From the NCBI GenBank assembly GCA_028826165.1, contig JAPDFW010000109.1:1-64000 (forward strand): a stretch of 64,000 nt of DNA, in the 5' to 3' direction. Position numbers and translations under genes: made by a program. The DNA is from Anaeramoeba ignava BMAN (taxonomy: Eukaryota; Protista; Anaeramoebae). This document shows, piece after piece, positions 44,205 to 55,122 of the stretch. Position 1 is the stretch's first letter. Each line of letters begins with the position of its first letter. The notes under the pieces are model-generated. The model searched no databases, was not told the DNA's origin, and saw only the letters and a program-made list of their open reading frames with translations.

Positions 44205-44751
44205 TTTATTTTTAAAAATAGAAAAATGAAAAAATGAAAAATGAAAAAATGAAAAAATTAAAAAATTAAATTAAATTAAATTAAATTAAATTAAATTGCT
44301 TTGTTGTTTCTTTGTCAATTTCTTGTTAATTTTTGTTTTTAAATTAAATAAAAAAGGGAAAAAAAAATTTTTTTTAAATAATTACGAATTTAGATTTAAA
44401 AAAAGAGAATAAGAAACGAATTTATGAATCTATTTAAAATTTATTTTTTAAAAACTGATCAAAAAAAAGGAAAATTTTTATTTATTAATTAATTAAACAA
44501 ATTTTCCTCTTTTTTCTTTTATTTAAATTTTTTTATTTTTTAAAATTATTTTTTTCATTTTTTCCTTTATTTTTAAATACAAAAAAATAATTTGAACTTT
44601 TTATTTTTTAATTTTTATTTTTTTATTTTTTTTTGTTGATCAATTTTTTTCTTTTTTTTTAGTTAAATTAAATTAAAATTAAAATTAAGTAATAATTTAT
44701 AAACAATAATAACAACAACCACATTATAAAAAAGATAAATTGAATAATAAA

Positions 44752-46170
44752 ATGGAGTCGAAAATAGCAATAATTGGACCAGGAAGTGTTGGAAAAAGTG
44801 CATTAACAATACAATTTCTTCAAAATCGATTTATAGCTGAGTATTTTAATTGGAAAAAAAAATTTACAAAAAAAAATTTTTTTTCACCTTTTTTTTTAAT
44901 CATTTTTAAATCATTTTTAAATTGATTTCTTTAAATCTTTTTTTAAATTGGATTTTAATTTGAATTTTAAATTGGATTTTAAATTGGATTTTAAATTGGA
45001 TTTTTTTAATCAATTTTTTAATCAATTTTTTAATCAATTTTTAAATCATTTTTAAATTGATTTTTTCTTTAAATCATTTTTAAATTGGATTTTAAATTGG
45101 ATTTTAAATTGGATTTTAAATTGGATTTTAAATTGGATTTTAAATTGGATTTTTAATCAAATTTTTAATCATTTTTAAATTGGATTTTAAATTGGATTTT
45201 AAATTGGATTTTTAAATCATTTTTTAAATTGGATTTTTTTAATCATTTTTTAATCATTTTTTAATCAATTTTTTTTCTTAGTTATGATCCAACTATTGAA
45301 GAAAATTATAGAAAGACTGTTTTTGTTGATAATGAACCTTGTCTTCTTAATATTTTGGATACTGCTGGACAAGAAGAATATCATTCAATGAGAGAACAAT
45401 ATATGAATTCAGGTCAAGGATTTTTGTTAGTTTTTTCTATTATTCATCAATCAACTTTTAATGAAATGAATGAATTTCGTGATCAAGTAAAAATACAAAA
45501 TGAAAATCAAAATTCAAAATCAAAATCAAAATTAAAATAAAAATCAAAATCAAAATCAAAATCAAATTCAAATTCAAAATCAAAAATCAAAATCAAAATC
45601 AAAATCAAAATCAAAATCAAAATCAAAATCAAAATCAAAATGAAAATCAAAATCAAAATCAAAATCAAAATCAAAATCAAAATAAATAAAAATAAAAATA
45701 ATCAAAATCAAAATCAAAATCAAAATTAAAATCAAAATCAAAATTAAAATCAAAATTAAAATCAAAATTAAAATCAAAATCAAAATCAAAATCAAAATCA
45801 AAATGAAAATCAAAATGAAAATGAAAATCAAATTAAAATCAAAATCAAAATCAAATCAAAGTAAATATTTAATTAATATTTATTTTTTTTTCCTTCATTT
45901 TAGATCATAAGAGTTAAAGATACTGAAGAATTTCCTTTAGTTTTAGTTGGAAATAAAGCTGATCTTGATAATAGAAGAGCTGTTCCAAAATCTGAATGTG
46001 AAAATTTAGCAAAAGATTTTCATTGTCCTTATATTGAAACTTCTGCAAAAACAAATCAAAATGTTGAAAAAGCTTTTCATGAAATTATTCGTTTAATAAG
46101 ACAAAAAACTTCTTCAAAATCTGAAAATCGTAAACCTTCAAAAAGAAAAAAGAAATGTTTAATAATTTGA
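44752..46170 (+). CDS. Ras-subfamily small GTPase; 3 exons
   Basis: GPGSVGKSALT, YDPTIEENY, LDTAGQEEY, VGNKADL and ETSAK motifs, a polybasic tail and CAAX (KRKKKCLII*). Confidence 0.95.
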
Positions 46171-46350: not shown

Positions 46351-48871
46351 ATGAAAAGTGAAAAAGTAAATTTAATTTCTTGTTTTAATTTACAAGAAAA
46401 AGTATTAGTTGCTGTTAAATGCAGGTTTGATTTTTTAAAATTGAAAAATTAAAATTGATTTTTTAAAATTGATTTTTTTTATTTAGACCTTTGCTTCAAA
46501 ATGAAATTGAATTTGGTCAAAAAAAGTAAATTTAAAAAGAAAAGAAATTATTTTTTTGTTTGTTTGTTAAATTGATTTTAATAATTAAATTTCTGGTTTT
46601 TTTTCTTTAGTGTTGTTGAAATTGATAGTAAAAATAAAAGTATTTATATTAAAAATGAAAAGACATTCAATCATAAACAATTCACATTTGATTTAGTTTT
46701 TGATGAAAAGTAAGACAAAAAAGAATAAAAAAAAATGGAATAAATTTTTTTTTTAATTTTCTTTTTTTTGTTTTTAAAAGTTCTCAACAAGAAGAACTTT
46801 TCCAAATAACAGATAGAATTGTAGATTCAGTTATATCAGGATTTAATGGAACAATTTTTTGTTATGGACAAACAGGAAGTGGGAAAGTAAATTGAAAAAA
46901 AATAGATTTGATTTAATTTAATTTTGATTTAAATTTGATTTAATTTTGATTCAATTTTGATTTGATTTGATTTGATTTGATTTGATTTTATTTGATTTAA
47001 TTTAATTCAATTTTGATTTAATTTGATTTGAATTTAATTTTAATTTGATTTGATTTAATTTGATTCAATTTTGATTTAATTTTGATTTGATTTAATTTCA
47101 TAGACATTCACAATGGAAGGAAATCAAGAAACAGGAATACAAGGAATCACACCAAATTCAATCCATAGAGTTTTTGAAAAAATTTCTCAACAACCCAAAA
47201 ATATCCAATTTTTAGTCCAACTTTCAGCATACGAAATTTACAATGAAAAAATAAGAGATTTGTTTTGCAAAGAAAGTAAATATGGATTAGCAGTCAAAGA
47301 ACACAAAACAAAAGGATTTTATATTGAATCAATATCATCAAAAATCCTTAGAAATGATCCCCAATCCATAAAAACAATTCTCAAAACAGTCCAAAAAAAT
47401 CGCAAAGTTGGAAAAACAAAAATGAACCAAAAATCGTCCCGTTCTCATTGCGTTTTTGCAATAACAATTGAAGCAAGTAATGTCGATGGAAAGGGAAAAA
47501 TCAAAAAAGGAACTTTGAATCTTGTTGATCTTGCAGGCTCAGAAAGACAAAAAAAATCCCATTCAAAAGGCCAAAGATTCCTTGAAGCAACAAAAATTAA
47601 TCTCTCACTTTCTGCTTTAGGAAATGTTATAAATGCACTTGCTACTGGAAGACAAAGACATGTTCCTTACAGAGATAGTTTGCTAACAAAACTTCTTCGT
47701 GAATCTCTTGGTGGAAATTCAAGAACTTTAATGATAGCAACCATTTCTCCTGGAGGTAAAAGAAATATCAAAATAAAAAAAAAAGGATTCTTCCAATTTT
47801 CTTCCTATTTTGGTTTGAATCCCAAATTCGAAATTATTCCAAAAAATTCAAATTCCGATTTTTATTCCATTCGATAAAAACAAAATAGATTATAATTTTC
47901 AAGAAACGATTTCAACTCTTAGATATGCAAATAGATCAAAAAATATCAAAAATACTCCAAGAATCAATGAACAAACAGATCCTCAAAATGCTTTGATTGA
48001 ACAATACAAAAATACAATTTCTCAACTCCAAAAAAAACTCCAAGACAATTTCCCACAAAATCAAACAGAAAAACAAAGAATAGAAATCATAAACGAACAA
48101 AAACTCAAAACAAAATATGAAAAAAAACTAGAAAAACAAAAGAAACAAAACCAGAAAGAAAAACAGGAAAAGAAAAAATTACTGGAAAAAATTAGAGAAA
48201 TGAAAAAGGATTTGATAAGTGGACAAGCACATAAAGAGTCATTGATTAGAGAAGTGGAACAAAAAACAGAAGACCAATTATTTTCTTCTCAAAAAATTTC
48301 TCATCTTCAAGAACAATCACAAACAAAAGACCAAATTATATCTAAATTAAAAGAAAAACTAAAAATGCAAGAAAATGAATTATTTGATCAGCAATCTGAA
48401 TTCCAAAAAGATATGGAATTCCAACTTACAATCATTAGGGAAATGAAAAAAATACTCAGTTTTCAAGCATTTGTGATTGATTCTTTCGTTCCTTTTCATG
48501 AATTACAAAAAATTAGACAACAAGCTGTTTATGATCGTGACTTAGAAACTTGGCATTTAGCTTCAATTTCCAAAAAATATTCTTTCAATCCAAATGAAAA
48601 TGAAAAAGAAAATGAAAATGAAAATCAAAATGAAAATGAAAATCAAAATCAAAATCAAAATCAAAATCAAAATGAAAATGAAAATGAAAATCAAAATGAA
48701 AATGAAAATCAAAATGAAAATGAAAATGAAAATCAAAATGAAAATGAAAATCAAAATGAAAATGAAAATGAAAATCTAATTGAAAATAATTTCAAATCCT
48801 TTTTTTTAAAAAATTCTTTTAATCAAAGACCTTCAACTTCAAGAGGTTTTCGAACTGAAAATTTTAAATAA
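46351..48871 (+). CDS. Kinesin-2 family motor (KIF3/KIF17-like)
   Basis: [15 protein letters not shown]|[17 protein letters not shown] and [10 protein letters not shown] motor motifs. The neck [21 protein letters not shown] and tail [21 protein letters not shown] are typical of kinesin-2. Confidence 0.9.
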
Positions 48872-48883
48872 AAAATCAAAATT

Positions 48884-49370
<487 letters not shown>

Positions 49371-50238: not shown

Positions 50239-53200
50239 ATGGATCCATCAATTTGCCCAAAATGTTTCCAAAATTATTCACAAGAAAGAAAACCAATGAT
50301 TATTTGCCAAGAAGGCCATTCAATTTGCGAAGATTGTGTGAAAAAAATTAATAGTTGTCCTTTTTGCAGAAGTTCTTTTGATGATTTTAAACCAATTTTA
50401 AACCGCACTTTATTACAACTTGTTGAGGTATTCAAGTTACAATCAAAAGAACAAAAAGTTCCATTTATTCCATTATCAGAATTAGAAGTTGAACCAAAAC
50501 CATTTGCTATAGGAGGAAGTGCTCAAATTTATAAAGGAAAATTTAAAGGAAAAGATGTTGTTATCAAGAGAATGATGGCTATGAATGATGAAAAATCAAA
50601 TCATGAATTCGAAAACGAACTGAAATTGGCTATGAAATTGGAACATCATTCAATTATTAAAATGTATGGAAAAACAGAAATGGATAAAATGATGGGAATT
50701 GTGATTGAATTCGCGAATCAAGGAGATTTAAGTAGCAAAATTCAAAGTTTAACATTTGAAGAACAAATTGATTATTCTTTGGAAATTATTGAAGGGATAA
50801 GAGTTTTACATTCAAATTCAATTATTCACCGTGATTTGAAACCTCAAAACATTTTGATAATCGATAATCATCCTAAAATTGCTGATTTTGGAATTTCAAA
50901 AGTGAGAGAACATACTCTGAAAGTTACTTCAGTTACCATTTCATTTGGTTATTCAGCTCCCGAACTTTTTCAAAAAGAGAATATTTATGATACTTCTTGT
51001 GATATTTTCAGTTTATCAATGATTTTATATTCAATTTTCTCAAAGAAAGAACCTTTCGAAAATTTGAATCCTGTTATGATTACTGTGAAAGTAATACAAG
51101 GTGAAAGACCTGAATTTCCAAATGATTTTCCAAAAGAGTTAGCGAAAGTGATTGATAAAGGATGGAGTACAAATCCAAAAGAAAGATCTTCATTGAATGA
51201 ATTTACTCAATGTTTAGAAAGAATAAAACCTCAAAGTAATTCTTTTTTTTTAACAAGATTTATTCAACCAACAAAACAAATTTTATTTTCTTTTAATTAT
51301 ATTTAATTTTCATAAACAATTAATGAAATGCCCAAAATAACAGAACCGATTCTACCAATTTCCCCTAACAATTTCACTCCTTCAAAACCTTCTAATAATA
51401 GAACTAATTTATCTCCACCTGTAATTTACAATACAACCTCACATTTTTCAAAATTAAAATTAAAATTAAAATCAAAATTAAAATCAAAATCAAAATCAAA
51501 ATCAAAATCAAAATATAAATCAAAATAAAAATCAAAATCAAAATCAAAAAAAAAAAATAAAAATCAAAATTAAAATTAAAATTAAAATCAAAATCAAAAT
51601 CAAAATTAAAATTAAAATTAAAATTAAAATTAAAATCAAAATCAAAATTAAAATTAAAATCAAAATTAAAATCAAAATCAAAATCAAAATCAAAATCAAA
51701 ATTAAAATCAAAATCAAAATCAAAATTAAAATTAAAATCAAAATTAAAATGAAAATGAAAATGAAAATAGATTGCTAAATTTGTGAAGAAAACTTTTGGA
51801 ATTGCTCAATACGATTTCGAAGCATCAAATCCATCAGAATTATCATTTTCATTTGGAGATGAAGTTGAAATTTTAGCACAACATCAAGATGGATGGGGAG
51901 ATGCAAAATTGAAAGGAAAAGCAGGACTTGTGCCTCTCAATTACTTAGATATAATTGAAAAAACAGTAAAAATGACACCACCATCGACACCCAAATCACG
52001 AATCCCACGAAATCAAATCGATAAATCAAATCAATTTTCAAAACCAAAATCACCAATATCTAATTTAAGAAAAAGAGAAACAAACCAAAATCAATTTCGA
52101 AATTCAAATCAAAATCAAAATCAAAAAAATAAGATCAAAGAAATCAAACCACAATTAGAAATGAATGTTTCTGAAAAAGGACAACAAACTTTAGAAGATT
52201 TTATAAATCAAATTTCAAATTTAAATGAAAGTAAATTGTTTTAAATTTTAAATTATTAAAAAATTATTTTGAAATTTAAATTCAAATTTAAAAACAAAAT
52301 TAAAAAAGAATCTATTGAAGAAACAATAAAATATATGAAACAATGCCCAAATAATCAAAAAATTCAAGAAAATGGATGTTTTATTTTACAAAAATTTGCA
52401 AACAAAAATGAAGGTAAAAATTTTATATCTTTTTATTATTTTCCAAAATTAAAATTTAAATGAAAATTACTTTTTTTTTGCTTTAATTTTTAATTCTAAA
52501 AAAAATTCAAAATCAATATTAAAACTCAATACTTAAAGATAATCGAAATAAACTCAGAAATTTAAAAGGAATAAAATGTGTTATTAAAGCAATGAATAAT
52601 TTCCAAAATAATCAAGATATTCAACTTAAAGGATGTGAAGCTTTATGGGATATTGCTGTTAGAAATGATGGTAAATAAAAAATAAATCAAAAAATAAATT
52701 GAAAAAATTATTTTAATCCATTATTTATTTTCCATTATTAATTATTAATTATTAATTATTAATTAAAAATTAAATCAAAAAATAAAAATATTAAAATAGA
52801 AAACAAAATTGAAATAAGAAATTTAAAAGGAATTGAACCTATTATTAAAGCAATGAATAATTTCCCAAATAATCAAAATATTCAATATTATGGATGTTCT
52901 GCTTTAGAGAATATTGCTGTTAATAATGGTAAATAAAAATAAAAATAAAAATAAAAAATATTATTTATTTTCCATTTTTTTTTTGAAATTTAAAATTAAA
53001 AATTAAATCAAAAAATACAAAAAATAATTACAAAAAATAAATCAAAATTAAATAAATTTACAAAATAATAAATAAATAATTATTAATTATTAATTAAAAT
53101 CCAAAAAAAAATTAATCAATTTCAAATTTATTTTCAAAAATAAAAATATTAAAATAGAAAACCAAATTGAAATAAGAAATTTAAAAGGAATTGAACCTAT

Positions 53201-54730
53201 TATTAAAGCAATGAATAATTTCCCAAATAATCAAGATATTCAATATAAAGGATGTGGAGCTTTACAGAATATTGGTGTTAATAATGGTAAATAAAAAATT
53301 AAAAATAAAAATAAAAAATATTATTTATTTTCCATTTTTTTTTTGAAATTATAAATTAAAAATTAAATCAAAAAATACAAAAAATAATTACAAAAAATAA
53401 ATCAAAATTAAATAAATTTACAAAATAATAAATAAATAATTATTAATTATTAATTAAAATCCAAAAAAAAAATTAATCAATTTCAAATTTATTTTCCAAA
53501 AATAAAAATATTAAAATAGAAAACAAAATTGAAATAAGAAATTTAAAAGGAATTGAACCTATTATTAAATCAATGAATAATTTCCCAAATAATCAAAATA
53601 TTCAATATTATGGATGTGGAGCTTTACAGAATATTGGTGTTAATAATGGTAAATAAAAAATTAAAAATAAAAAATCAAAATAAAAAATAATTATTTTCCA
53701 TTTTTGAATTTTTGAAATTAAAAATTAAATCAAAAAATACAAAAAATAATTACAAAAAATAAATTAAAATTAAATAAATTTACAAAATAATAAATAAATA
53801 ATTATTAATTATTAATTAAAATCCAAAAAAAAAATTAATCAATTTCAAATTTATTTTCAAAAATAAAAATATTAAAATAGAAAACAAAATTGAAATAAGA
53901 AATTTAAAAGGAATTGAACCTATTATTAAATCAATGAATAATTTCCCAAATAATCAAAATATTCAATATTATGGATGTGGAGCTTTATGGAGTATTGCTG
54001 TTAATAATGGTAAATAAAAAATAAAAAATAAAAAATAAAAAATAATTATTTTCCATTTTTTTTTTGAAATTTGAAATTAAAAATTAAATCAAAAAATACA
54101 AAAAATAATTACAAAAAATAAATCAAAATTAAATAAATTTACAAAATAATAAATAAATAATTATTAATTATTAATTAAAATCCAAAAAAAAAATTAATCA
54201 ATTTCAAATTTATTTTCAAAAATAAAAATATTAAAATAGAAAACAAAATTGAAATAAGAAATTTAAAAGGAATTGAACCTATTATTAAATCAATGAATAA
54301 TTTCCCAAATAATCAAAATATTCAATATTATGGATGTGGAGCTTTATGGAGTATTGCTGTTAATAATGGTAAATAAAAATTAAAAATCAAAATAAAAAAT
54401 AATTATTTATTTTCCATTTTTTTTTTGAAATTCAAAATTAAAAATTAAATCAAAAAATACAAAAAATAATTACAAAAAATAAATCAAAATTAAAATTAAA
54501 TTTACAAAATAATAAATAAATAATTATTAATTATTAATTAAAATCCAAAAAAAAAATTAATCAATTTCAAATTTATTTTCAAAAATAAAAATATTAAAAT
54601 AGAAAACCAAATTGAAATAAGAAATTTAAAAGGAATTGAATCTATCAAAAAAGCAATGAATAATTTCCCAAATAATCAAAAAATTCAAGAAAAAGGAAAA
54701 TGGGCTTTAGGAAGATTACAAAAAAATTGA
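50239..54730 (+). CDS. RING finger - TKL-type protein kinase - SH3 - armadillo-repeat protein; about 11 exons
   Basis: RING: CPKC...CQEGHSICEDC...CPFCR. Kinase: IGGSAQIY, VVIK, HRDLKPQN, DFG, APE. SH3: AQYDFEASNPSELSF...GW...GLVPLNY. Then ARM repeats, one per exon; stop at 54730. Confidence 0.9.
52800..54730 (+). repeat. Tandem exon+intron units of about 360 bp, each encoding one 43-aa ARM repeat
   Basis: 129-nt phase 1-1 exons at 52800-52928, 53158-53286, 53520-53648, 53881-54009 and 54240-54368, then a terminal exon at 54603-54730. The introns are near-identical and 229-234 nt long. Confidence 0.95.

Positions 54731-54836: not shown

Positions 54837-55122
<286 letters not shown>

Follow-up and report, generated by a model that had tools for sequence, protein, structure and literature searches.

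The 64,000 nucleotides analysed here (hereafter the window) are positions 1 to 64,000 of contig JAPDFW010000109.1 of Anaeramoeba ignava BMAN (assembly GCA_028826165.1), a metamonad amoeba with an extremely A+T-rich genome (PMC11550330); the G+C content of the window is 16%. Our subject is a gene of eleven exons on the + strand (50239-54730) that ends, on its 3′ side, in an array of armadillo (ARM) repeats. Its annotated product is a protein of 847 aa (P0151, locus tag M0811_11943) in which a RING-like finger, a protein kinase domain, an SH3 domain and the ARM array follow each other in this order. The gene is a member of a large, recently expanded family, whose repeats vary almost only at what is predicted to be their peptide-binding face.

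All eleven exons fit P0151 in order, with GT-AG borders and one split codon per phase-1 junction, in a comparison of the translations exon by exon; with the match verified in this way, the database searches used single exons, P0151 itself or the paralogous protein P0001. At the N-terminus, the finger retains all eight zinc ligands (C6-x2-C9-x13-C23-x3-H27-x2-C30-x2-C33-x6-C40-x2-C43), the C3HC4 pattern of a putative ubiquitin ligase, and UniRef names the protein 'RING-type E3 ubiquitin transferase'. The kinase exceeds its Pfam cut-off (Pkinase, 158-162 bits in P0151 and exon 1) and keeps its catalytic motifs (HRDLK at 197, DFG at 216, APE at 240, and the Lys from 'VVIK'). Both domains had been proposed in a first-pass annotation made from the nucleotide letters and their translations, and both are recovered here. 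The SH3 domain is also over its cut-off (SH3_1, 45 bits in P0151), and no BTB/POZ domain was found in M0811_11943/P0151 itself when its membership among BTB-Cul3 adaptors was tested. The ARM domain occupies 52309-54730 and comprises an N-cap, a first repeat, five internal repeats and a C-cap, all of them listed in Table 1. Position 52309, which the first-pass annotation took as the start of the ARM array, is the first base of the N-cap exon (52309-52413) and lies before the five-unit array.

The five internal exons are each 129 nt long, bounded by AG and GT, and of phase 1-1, with introns of 229-234 nt, and Tandem Repeats Finder (TRF) recognises exon plus intron as one tandem unit, which bears out the proposal that symmetric exons had been duplicated together with their introns. 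The helix-3 strings quoted in that proposal, including those of the two flanking repeats, match the translation exactly. In the alignment of the five units there are 12 variable exon columns, every one of them non-synonymous (K/Q, A/S, N/D, Y/K, S/G, E/Q/W, N/S, A/G), and the differences include two- and three-base codon swaps, as had also been claimed. The three other distinct repeats among the five are 86-90% identical to the first at the amino acid level, and exons of the nearest paralogs reach up to 90% identity to that same repeat (alignment A1). Exon variability is higher than that of the unique 3′ two-thirds of the intron (12/129 vs 1/165 substitution columns, p = 3e-4).

M0811_11943 is not a single-copy gene. 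At least 531 DNA matches to the exon-plus-intron unit are distributed over many contigs of the 42.8-Mb genome, and a profile of the repeat peptide gives 1527 first-look candidates, with 150 of the 150 that were scored reaching at least 89 bits. Among the loci returned by two genome searches, 24 arrays on 19 contigs were read directly, with a total of 142 intact repeat exons, and the variation statistics given below use 120 core exons. All the repeat exons read are 129 or 132 nt long, AG/GT-bounded and of phase 1, and one exon equals one repeat throughout, with introns that vary in length by subfamily (~60-260 nt). The arrays also have their terminal exons in common: the N-cap is kept in about 20 paralogous arrays, the 'first-type' exon opens those on contigs C80, C68, C72, C81, C102 and others, and the C-cap type of the last exon also closes paralogous arrays. 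The number of repeat exons goes from 3 to 11 among the arrays read directly, and clustered profile matches on C46, C17 and C60 point to arrays of roughly 15-20 repeats. An (AATC)n microsatellite, translated as INQS repeats, lies behind the C-cap exon not only in this gene but also in its paralogs on C80, C68, C72 and C81 (loci L005, L007, L009 and L010), and thus the duplicated segment seems to include the 3′ flank. Existing annotation describes the proteins of the family only as 'aardvark' or 'hypothetical'. The annotation of one paralog, P0001 (C68:278072-282267, L011/L037), contains an odd junction (…NIAANNG followed by NLKGIEPII…), at which the 3′ end of a repeat exon appears to lack the usual splice frame and an alternative site appears to have been taken; a frameshift in the exon or a mistake in the annotation may be the reason.

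Sequence profiles and structure models give the array an armadillo fold, in which tandem three-helix units of ~42 aa form a right-handed superhelix. P0151 scores 130.1 bits with ARM_LRRK2 (PF23744, cut-off 26.2) and 49.5 bits with Arm (PF00514, cut-off 20.6), and single repeat exons alone score below the Pfam cut-offs for ARM. AlphaFold2 models of the array of this gene (P0151:500-847; predicted local distance difference test, pLDDT, 95.9; predicted template modelling score, pTM, 0.92) and of a paralogous array (P0001:490-835; pLDDT 95.5, pTM 0.91) both consist of eight regular three-helix repeats. The best Foldseek matches of the P0001 model in the PDB are engineered or designed ARM proteins (4rv1, 6s9o, 5mfm) together with beta-catenin (TM-scores up to 0.77), and a phmmer search of the PDB with the gene's own array retrieves ODAD2/ARMC4 (2e-28), Vac8 (6e-23), designed ARM proteins and the ARM domain of LRRK2. 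One exon corresponds nearly exactly to one structural repeat, with helix 1 (H1) extending from two residues before the exon to residue 7, helix 2 (H2) from 11 to 20 and helix 3 (H3) from 25 to 38, at a period of 43 residues.

The codon numbering of the exons coincides with that of designed ARM repeats, in which Ile27 and Leu32 are buried and Glu30 and Trp33 are surface residues of the peptide-binding site (PMC4756613). Variability along H3 is one-sided (variability moment 0.61, permutation p = 0.0017), positions 26, 29, 30, 33, 36 and 37 falling on one face and the invariant I27, Q28, G31, C32, A34, L35 and I38 on the other. Asn37 of the designed proteins, which holds the peptide backbone, corresponds to a mostly conserved Asn in the family repeats. 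By this correspondence of positions with the designed proteins, a ligand would be held in the groove formed by the H3 helices.

Over the 120 core exons the scaffold of the repeat is nearly invariant, down to the codon (N-x-IEIRNLKGIEPIIK(A/S)MNNF(P)NNQ(D/N)IQ--GC-AL--I---N), and the codons GGA, ATT, TTC and CAA are fixed at many of its sites. Entropy exceeds 2.4 bits at codons 29, 30, 36 and 40, and is 1.3-1.8 bits at codons 2, 13, 26, 33, 37, 39 and 42. When non-synonymous (dN) and synonymous (dS) rates were estimated per site from Fitch-parsimony counts on a FastTree tree of these exons, dN reached 4.4-6.5 times the global dS at the first four sites and 2.0-2.9 times at the other seven, all eleven being significant after Bonferroni correction, and most scaffold sites stayed at 0-0.6 times the global dS. 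Helix 3 is a region where dN exceeds dS, and this result, like the many copies of the unit, goes against outcomes that the first-pass annotation had named as refuting its proposal. The five sites that it had placed on the peptide-binding face of the helix (26, 30, 33, 36 and 37) are all among the significant ones, with 30 and 33 being peptide-contact residues of the designed proteins.

The same picture emerges within arrays, where distances were obtained from pooled Nei-Gojobori counts and from pairwise-aligned introns. The proportion of non-synonymous differences (pN) at sites 29, 30, 33, 36, 37 and 40 is 0.316, vs a synonymous proportion (pS) of 0.048, a scaffold pN of 0.048 and an intron distance of 0.038, that is, these six codons diverge ~6-8 times faster than synonymous sites or introns. 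The excess of six-site pN over pS is seen in 18 of the 19 arrays, and the 120 repeats carry 107 distinct six-residue codes at these positions. Count-based tests therefore indicate positive selection on the predicted ligand-contact residues. Codon 36 carries a signature of its own. Where it encodes Gln, Leu, Gly, Arg, Glu or Lys, it ends in G in 63 cases and in A in four, vs 22 G-ending and 1622 A-ending codons for the same amino acids elsewhere in the exons (p = 1e-90), in a genome with a codon usage that is otherwise almost wholly A-ending. The forms found are TGG, TTG, CAG, GGG, AAG, GAG, AGG and TCG (e.g., 52907-52909 and 53265-53267); with the third base almost always G, whatever the amino acid, change at this codon has been restricted to positions one and two of an ancestral TGG. 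Its silent third base stays at the family consensus, as recurrent replacement against homogenisation predicts and slow neutral decay does not.

The repeats also carry traces of exchange. The 3′ ~78 nt of the second internal exon (53158-53286), with the first 20 nt of the next intron, recur without a difference at a 'first-type' exon in one of the BTB genes, on C72, and the 5′ half of that C72 exon and its upstream intron are unrelated to their counterparts here. This shared patch (~100 nt) is a short tract of conversion or recombination with its breakpoint inside the exon. Together with one pair of exon columns that fails the four-gamete test among the five units, it agrees with the mosaic distribution of variants described at first sight. 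Aligned introns differ by 4.8% within arrays and by 7.9% between arrays. There are decayed copies as well: an otherwise intact repeat exon with TAA at hypervariable codon 29 (C72:107458-107583, L009/L020/L033), truncated exons in arrays on C60 and C89, and, on C72 and C80, relics of C-cap exons located 3′ of the stop codon. Jointly, these traces of exchange and decay indicate that exon-plus-intron units undergo unequal crossing-over and homogenising conversion, with birth-and-death turnover of copies.

What precedes the array differs among the members of the family. At least 12 of the 24 arrays follow a BTB domain and a long coiled coil, two follow a RING-kinase-SH3 module (M0811_11943 and P0001, at C68:278072) and one, on C67, directly follows a RING finger; for the remaining ones no informative domain was found within the ~1-2 kb of upstream sequence examined. 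BTB is also present in proteins P0006, P0012, P0021 and P0043, and further combinations, ARM-RCC1-BTB and BTB-BACK-ARM, occur among the database proteins of this organism. BTB domains act as adaptors of Cul3, and the RING and U-box belong to the E3 ubiquitin ligase (E3) modules. The output of E3 plus kinase suggested by the first-pass annotation stands for two of the 24 arrays and does not extend to the family as a rule, the common partner being a ubiquitin-ligase module and not a kinase. A U-box-kinase-ARM order is found in ~850-910-aa proteins of other eukaryotes (P0153, P0160, P0152 and P0154, from MMETSP, EukProt and JGI), suggesting that the architecture of E3 finger, kinase and ARM is older than the Anaeramoeba expansion. 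Two further observations concern the partners. Upstream of one array (C107:204288-207695, L039), an uninterrupted open reading frame (ORF) of ~500 aa contains little else than copies of the coiled-coil unit 'QQKDQEINQF(K/N)R(N/D)I', so the coiled-coil spacer of the BTB paralogs seems to be itself an expanding repeat. The metagenomic proteins P0004 and P0156 are fusions of ARM arrays of this same LRRK2/ARMC5 type with an NAD:arginine ADP-ribosyltransferase domain (PF01129).

The gene is expressed. In X5, a public run on a second sample of this organism, the exons of the gene are covered and the introns are not, a GT..AG joint removes exactly 52414-52538 (the 125 nt between 52413 and 52539), and one contig runs from the end of exon 3 straight into position 52309. 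X5 therefore behaves like RNA and supports two junctions of M0811_11943; it also holds a splice junction belonging to a paralog. The public runs consist of short contigs, those of DNA share their sample with the assembly, and the data as a whole represent one strain (BMAN) and one assembly.

Table 1. Exons of M0811_11943 and tandem or simple repeats in and around the gene (positions in the window).
Feature	Position	Strand	Evidence or correspondence
Exon 1: RING-like C3HC4 finger (residues 6-43) and protein kinase domain (residues 92-325)	50239-51235	+	P0151 residues 1-332
Exon 2: short Pro/Ser/Asn-rich linker	51344-51420	+	P0151 residues 334-358; AG/GT borders
Intron 2, with (TCAAAA)n microsatellite	51421-51770	+	TRF; not in P0151
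Exon 3: SH3 domain and Pro-rich low-complexity linker	51771-52230	+	Pfam SH3_1, E = 9e-13; P0151 residues 359-511
Exon 4: N-cap ARM-like repeat, 105 nt, phase 1-1	52309-52413	+	P0151 residues 513-546; X5 splice joint
Exon 5: 'first-type' ARM repeat NRNKLRNLKGIKCVIK..., 132 nt, phase 1-1	52539-52670	+	matches P0151
Internal ARM repeat exon 1, helix 3 NIQYYGCSALENIA	52800-52928	+	matches P0151
Internal ARM repeat exon 2, helix 3 DIQYKGCGALQNIG	53158-53286	+	matches P0151; 3′ part shared with C72 exon
Internal ARM repeat exon 3, helix 3 NIQYYGCGALQNIG	53520-53648	+	matches P0151
Internal ARM repeat exon 4, helix 3 NIQYYGCGALWSIA	53881-54009	+	matches P0151
Internal ARM repeat exon 5, helix 3 NIQYYGCGALWSIA	54240-54368	+	matches P0151
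Last exon: C-cap repeat ...KIQEKGKWALGRLQKN, TGA stop at end	54603-54730	+	matches P0151
Tandem duplication unit (exon plus intron), period 362 bp, 5.3 copies, 95% matches	52778-54688	+	TRF
(AATC)n microsatellite directly 3′ of the gene	54837-55066		TRF
Second (AATC)n microsatellite, 5′ of the gene	48880-49314		TRF

Intron 2 is mostly filled by its microsatellite, (TCAAAA)n, which extends over 320 bp (51448-51768). Of the upstream neighbours, the sequence at 44740-45540 resembles an intron-split small GTPase of the Ras family and that at 47113-48871 a kinesin motor with, behind it, a coiled coil that contains a (NE/NQ)n tract. A ciliate origin with a reassigned genetic code was considered and rejected: Gln is always CAA, long ORFs are read in the standard code, and the proteins map to A. 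ignava.

Taken together, M0811_11943 is an expressed RING-kinase-SH3-ARM gene of a diversified family, and we consider it likely that the arrays of this family serve as target-recognition surfaces for ubiquitin ligases. Each ARM repeat (H1-H2-H3) is carried by one symmetric phase-1 exon, and arrays would gain or lose units of exon plus intron through unequal crossing-over. Exons and introns would be held nearly identical by gene conversion, both inside a locus and from one locus to another, and diversifying selection would keep H3 sites 29, 30, 33, 36, 37 and 40, plus a few neighbours, different in almost every repeat. These variable positions would line the concave groove in which ARM proteins hold extended peptides, and each array is therefore most likely a custom surface for the recognition of peptides or proteins. 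With most of the sister arrays set on BTB domains, their likeliest role is substrate recognition for E3 ligases: the array would bring chosen targets to a ubiquitin ligase and, in M0811_11943, also to a kinase. As judged from the domain combinations, the arrays would act as E3 substrate receptors.

Several points weigh against this interpretation. The finger at the N-terminus does not reach the Pfam gathering score of any RING model it was compared with: Sina_RING gives 29.1 bits with exon 1 alone and 26.1 with the full protein (cut-off 29.3), and five further RING models are likewise sub-threshold. The dN/dS values come from parsimony and Nei-Gojobori counts on short, recombining sequences of an extremely AT-rich genome, the class of six sites was picked after the data were seen, and the exposure of the variable residues derives from helical periodicity and from the correspondence with designed ARM proteins rather than from coordinates. 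The statistics of the single five-unit array are weak, the strong ones coming from the family. With ~18% synonymous sites, the chance that all 9-12 events in this array are non-synonymous is 0.09-0.17, and exon variability is not above that of the whole intron when its slippage-prone, A/T-rich 5′ part is included (p = 0.49). These two results, and an overall dN/dS of only 1.2-1.3 (1.23 over the 120 exons), would suit relaxed constraint only, in which the copies are young duplicates and the variable residues are surface positions free to drift, with neither selection for diversity nor a specific set of ligands. However, drift caps dN at the neutral rate, a limit that is exceeded both by the within-array pN of the six sites, when set against pS and intron distance, and by the per-site dN of 4-6 times the global dS. 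The presumably exposed polar residues of H1 and H2 (E4, R6, N7, K9, E12, K16, N19, N20 and N23-Q25) are nearly invariant, which argues against a simple relaxation of all surface sites, and the frozen third base of codon 36 speaks against slow neutral decay. On balance relaxed constraint alone seems unlikely to us.

Diversity could also be produced at the level of transcripts, if skipping of phase 1-1 exons, an idea of the first-pass annotation, or somatic rearrangement yielded many receptor isoforms per gene. Any skip would stay in frame, the internal exons being symmetric and 129 or 132 nt long, and the decayed, stop-bearing exons inside arrays must be skipped if those genes still function. 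Yet no skipped junction was seen in the RNA-like run X5 (short contigs, not assignable to one paralog), the annotated mRNA contains all five exons, and germline diversity over hundreds of repeats already explains the pattern, which leaves such combinatorial transcripts decidedly improbable. The number of units in this gene is a different matter. It rests on one assembly, with no read or contig spanning the array, which is a further point to set against our interpretation, and the five units could conceivably be an expanded, collapsed or chimeric reconstruction from reads of paralogous arrays: the genome holds more than 500 copies of the unit, the public contigs break within the array, and the DNA runs derive from the assembly's own sample. 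Nevertheless, long reads went into both the making and the checking of the published assembly (PMC11550330), and the array covers no more than 2.4 kb. Its units are set apart by variants specific to each, conflicting letters were not reported within the repeat exons, and the same architecture recurs in the 24 arrays on 19 contigs and, as a BTB-ARM array, in an independent transcriptome protein (P0043). An assembly artefact is thus very improbable, and the conclusions drawn at the level of the family are independent of the exact copy number in this array.

The recognition of targets for ubiquitin ligases, which we favour, could be taken one step further. The arrays might constitute a germline-encoded, fast-diversifying intracellular repertoire, each repeat adding a short hypervariable code on helix 3, much as in engineered modular peptide binders but of natural origin. 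Whole arrays would read stretches of proteins that are foreign or come from symbionts (those of prey bacteria, sulfate-reducing symbionts, Legionellales-type parasites or giant viruses) and pass them to Cul3/BTB, RING and kinase outputs, as a ubiquitin-coupled system resembling innate immunity or controlling symbionts. We regard this extension as possible but doubtful, and an immune-receptor role of the array is speculation. Repeat arrays that are nearly identical but for a few surface positions are a hallmark of fast-evolving recognition systems, such as the variable lymphocyte receptors of lampreys, the repeats of fungal NOD-like receptors (NLRs) and the leucine-rich repeats (LRR) and tetratricopeptide repeats (TPR) of brown algae. 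If our interpretation is true, ARM would be a fourth scaffold for this recurrent evolutionary solution, the family would offer hundreds of natural variants at the positions that protein engineers randomise in designed ARM binders, and a free-living anaerobe that houses bacterial symbionts would provide a testable system of non-self or symbiont surveillance.

The family is not described in the Anaeramoeba genome paper or in the other Anaeramoeba papers and supplements, as far as these exist as searchable text, and literature searches for ARM arrays under diversifying selection found no prior description. Among the searchable papers, no natural system of hypervariable repeats uses the armadillo fold or couples mainly to ubiquitin-ligase modules. 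Several known systems share parts of the pattern. The closest parallels in structure are the designed ARM proteins (dArmRP; PMC4756613) and importin-alpha, with an N-cap, identical internal repeats of 42-43 aa and a C-cap. The designed proteins are also the best structural matches, and hypervariable sites 30 and 33 of the family are engineered peptide-contact positions in them, Asn37 being mostly kept; unlike them, the A. ignava repeats are a natural family, have mostly Gly rather than Trp at position 33, and their binding of peptides is a prediction. In domain order, the U-box/RING-kinase-ARM proteins (P0153, P0160) present the E3 finger, kinase and ARM in the same sequence, and in plant U-box-ARM (PUB) ligases ARM is likewise the target-binding part of an E3. 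In contrast to both, M0811_11943 has a RING-like C3HC4 finger instead of a U-box and an inserted SH3 domain, and the ARM regions of P0153 and P0160 are ~28-29% identical to the homogenised cassette that in A. ignava is shared with the BTB genes.

Lineage-specific expansion of E3 adaptors, with a fast-evolving substrate-binding part and a conserved ligase-docking part, is shared with the nematode MATH-BTB and F-box families and with RING proteins of the TRIM5 type. Selection in the two nematode families was reportedly treated by Thomas in 2006. Unlike the MATH, FBA or B30.2 recognition domains, A. ignava uses a modular array of repeats with few variable positions in each. In the WD, ANK and TPR domains of fungal NLRs, the repeats are more than 85% identical internally, evolve in concert and are under positive selection at the surface where they bind (Dyrka et al., 2014, PMC4986451). 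The likeness to these repeats (HNWD/HET WD40, ANK, TPR; Paoletti, 2007; PMC4986451) includes high internal identity, exchange both inside and among paralogs, a few hypervariable positions under diversifying selection on the interaction surface, and one cassette joined to different N-terminal effector domains; the A. ignava arrays differ in having an ARM scaffold without NACHT or NB-ARC, and fungal repeats are not split one per exon.

The analogy with exon-shuffled LRR and TPR genes of brown algae, already drawn in the first-pass annotation, holds. In the ROCO-LRR and NB-ARC-TPR genes of Ectocarpus each exon holds a single repeat, exons are shuffled, decayed ones persist within introns, and there is positive selection (Zambounis et al., 2012, PMC3341825). 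In both cases a large, species-specific protist family encodes one repeat per frame-preserving exon, duplicates exon plus intron in tandem, contains inactivated copies within its arrays and shows positive selection on predicted ligand-binding residues. The A. ignava repeat, however, is a 43-aa ARM unit and not a 24-aa LRR or a TPR, its exons are of phase 1 rather than phase 0, and the organism is a metamonad amoeba; fusion to ROC-COR or NB-ARC switches was looked for and not found in its arrays, which have BTB, RING and kinase-SH3, modules of ubiquitination and phosphorylation, as partners. From these known systems the A. ignava family differs in its ARM scaffold, its phase-1 exons, and its BTB, RING and kinase partners in place of NB-ARC, NACHT and ROC-COR.

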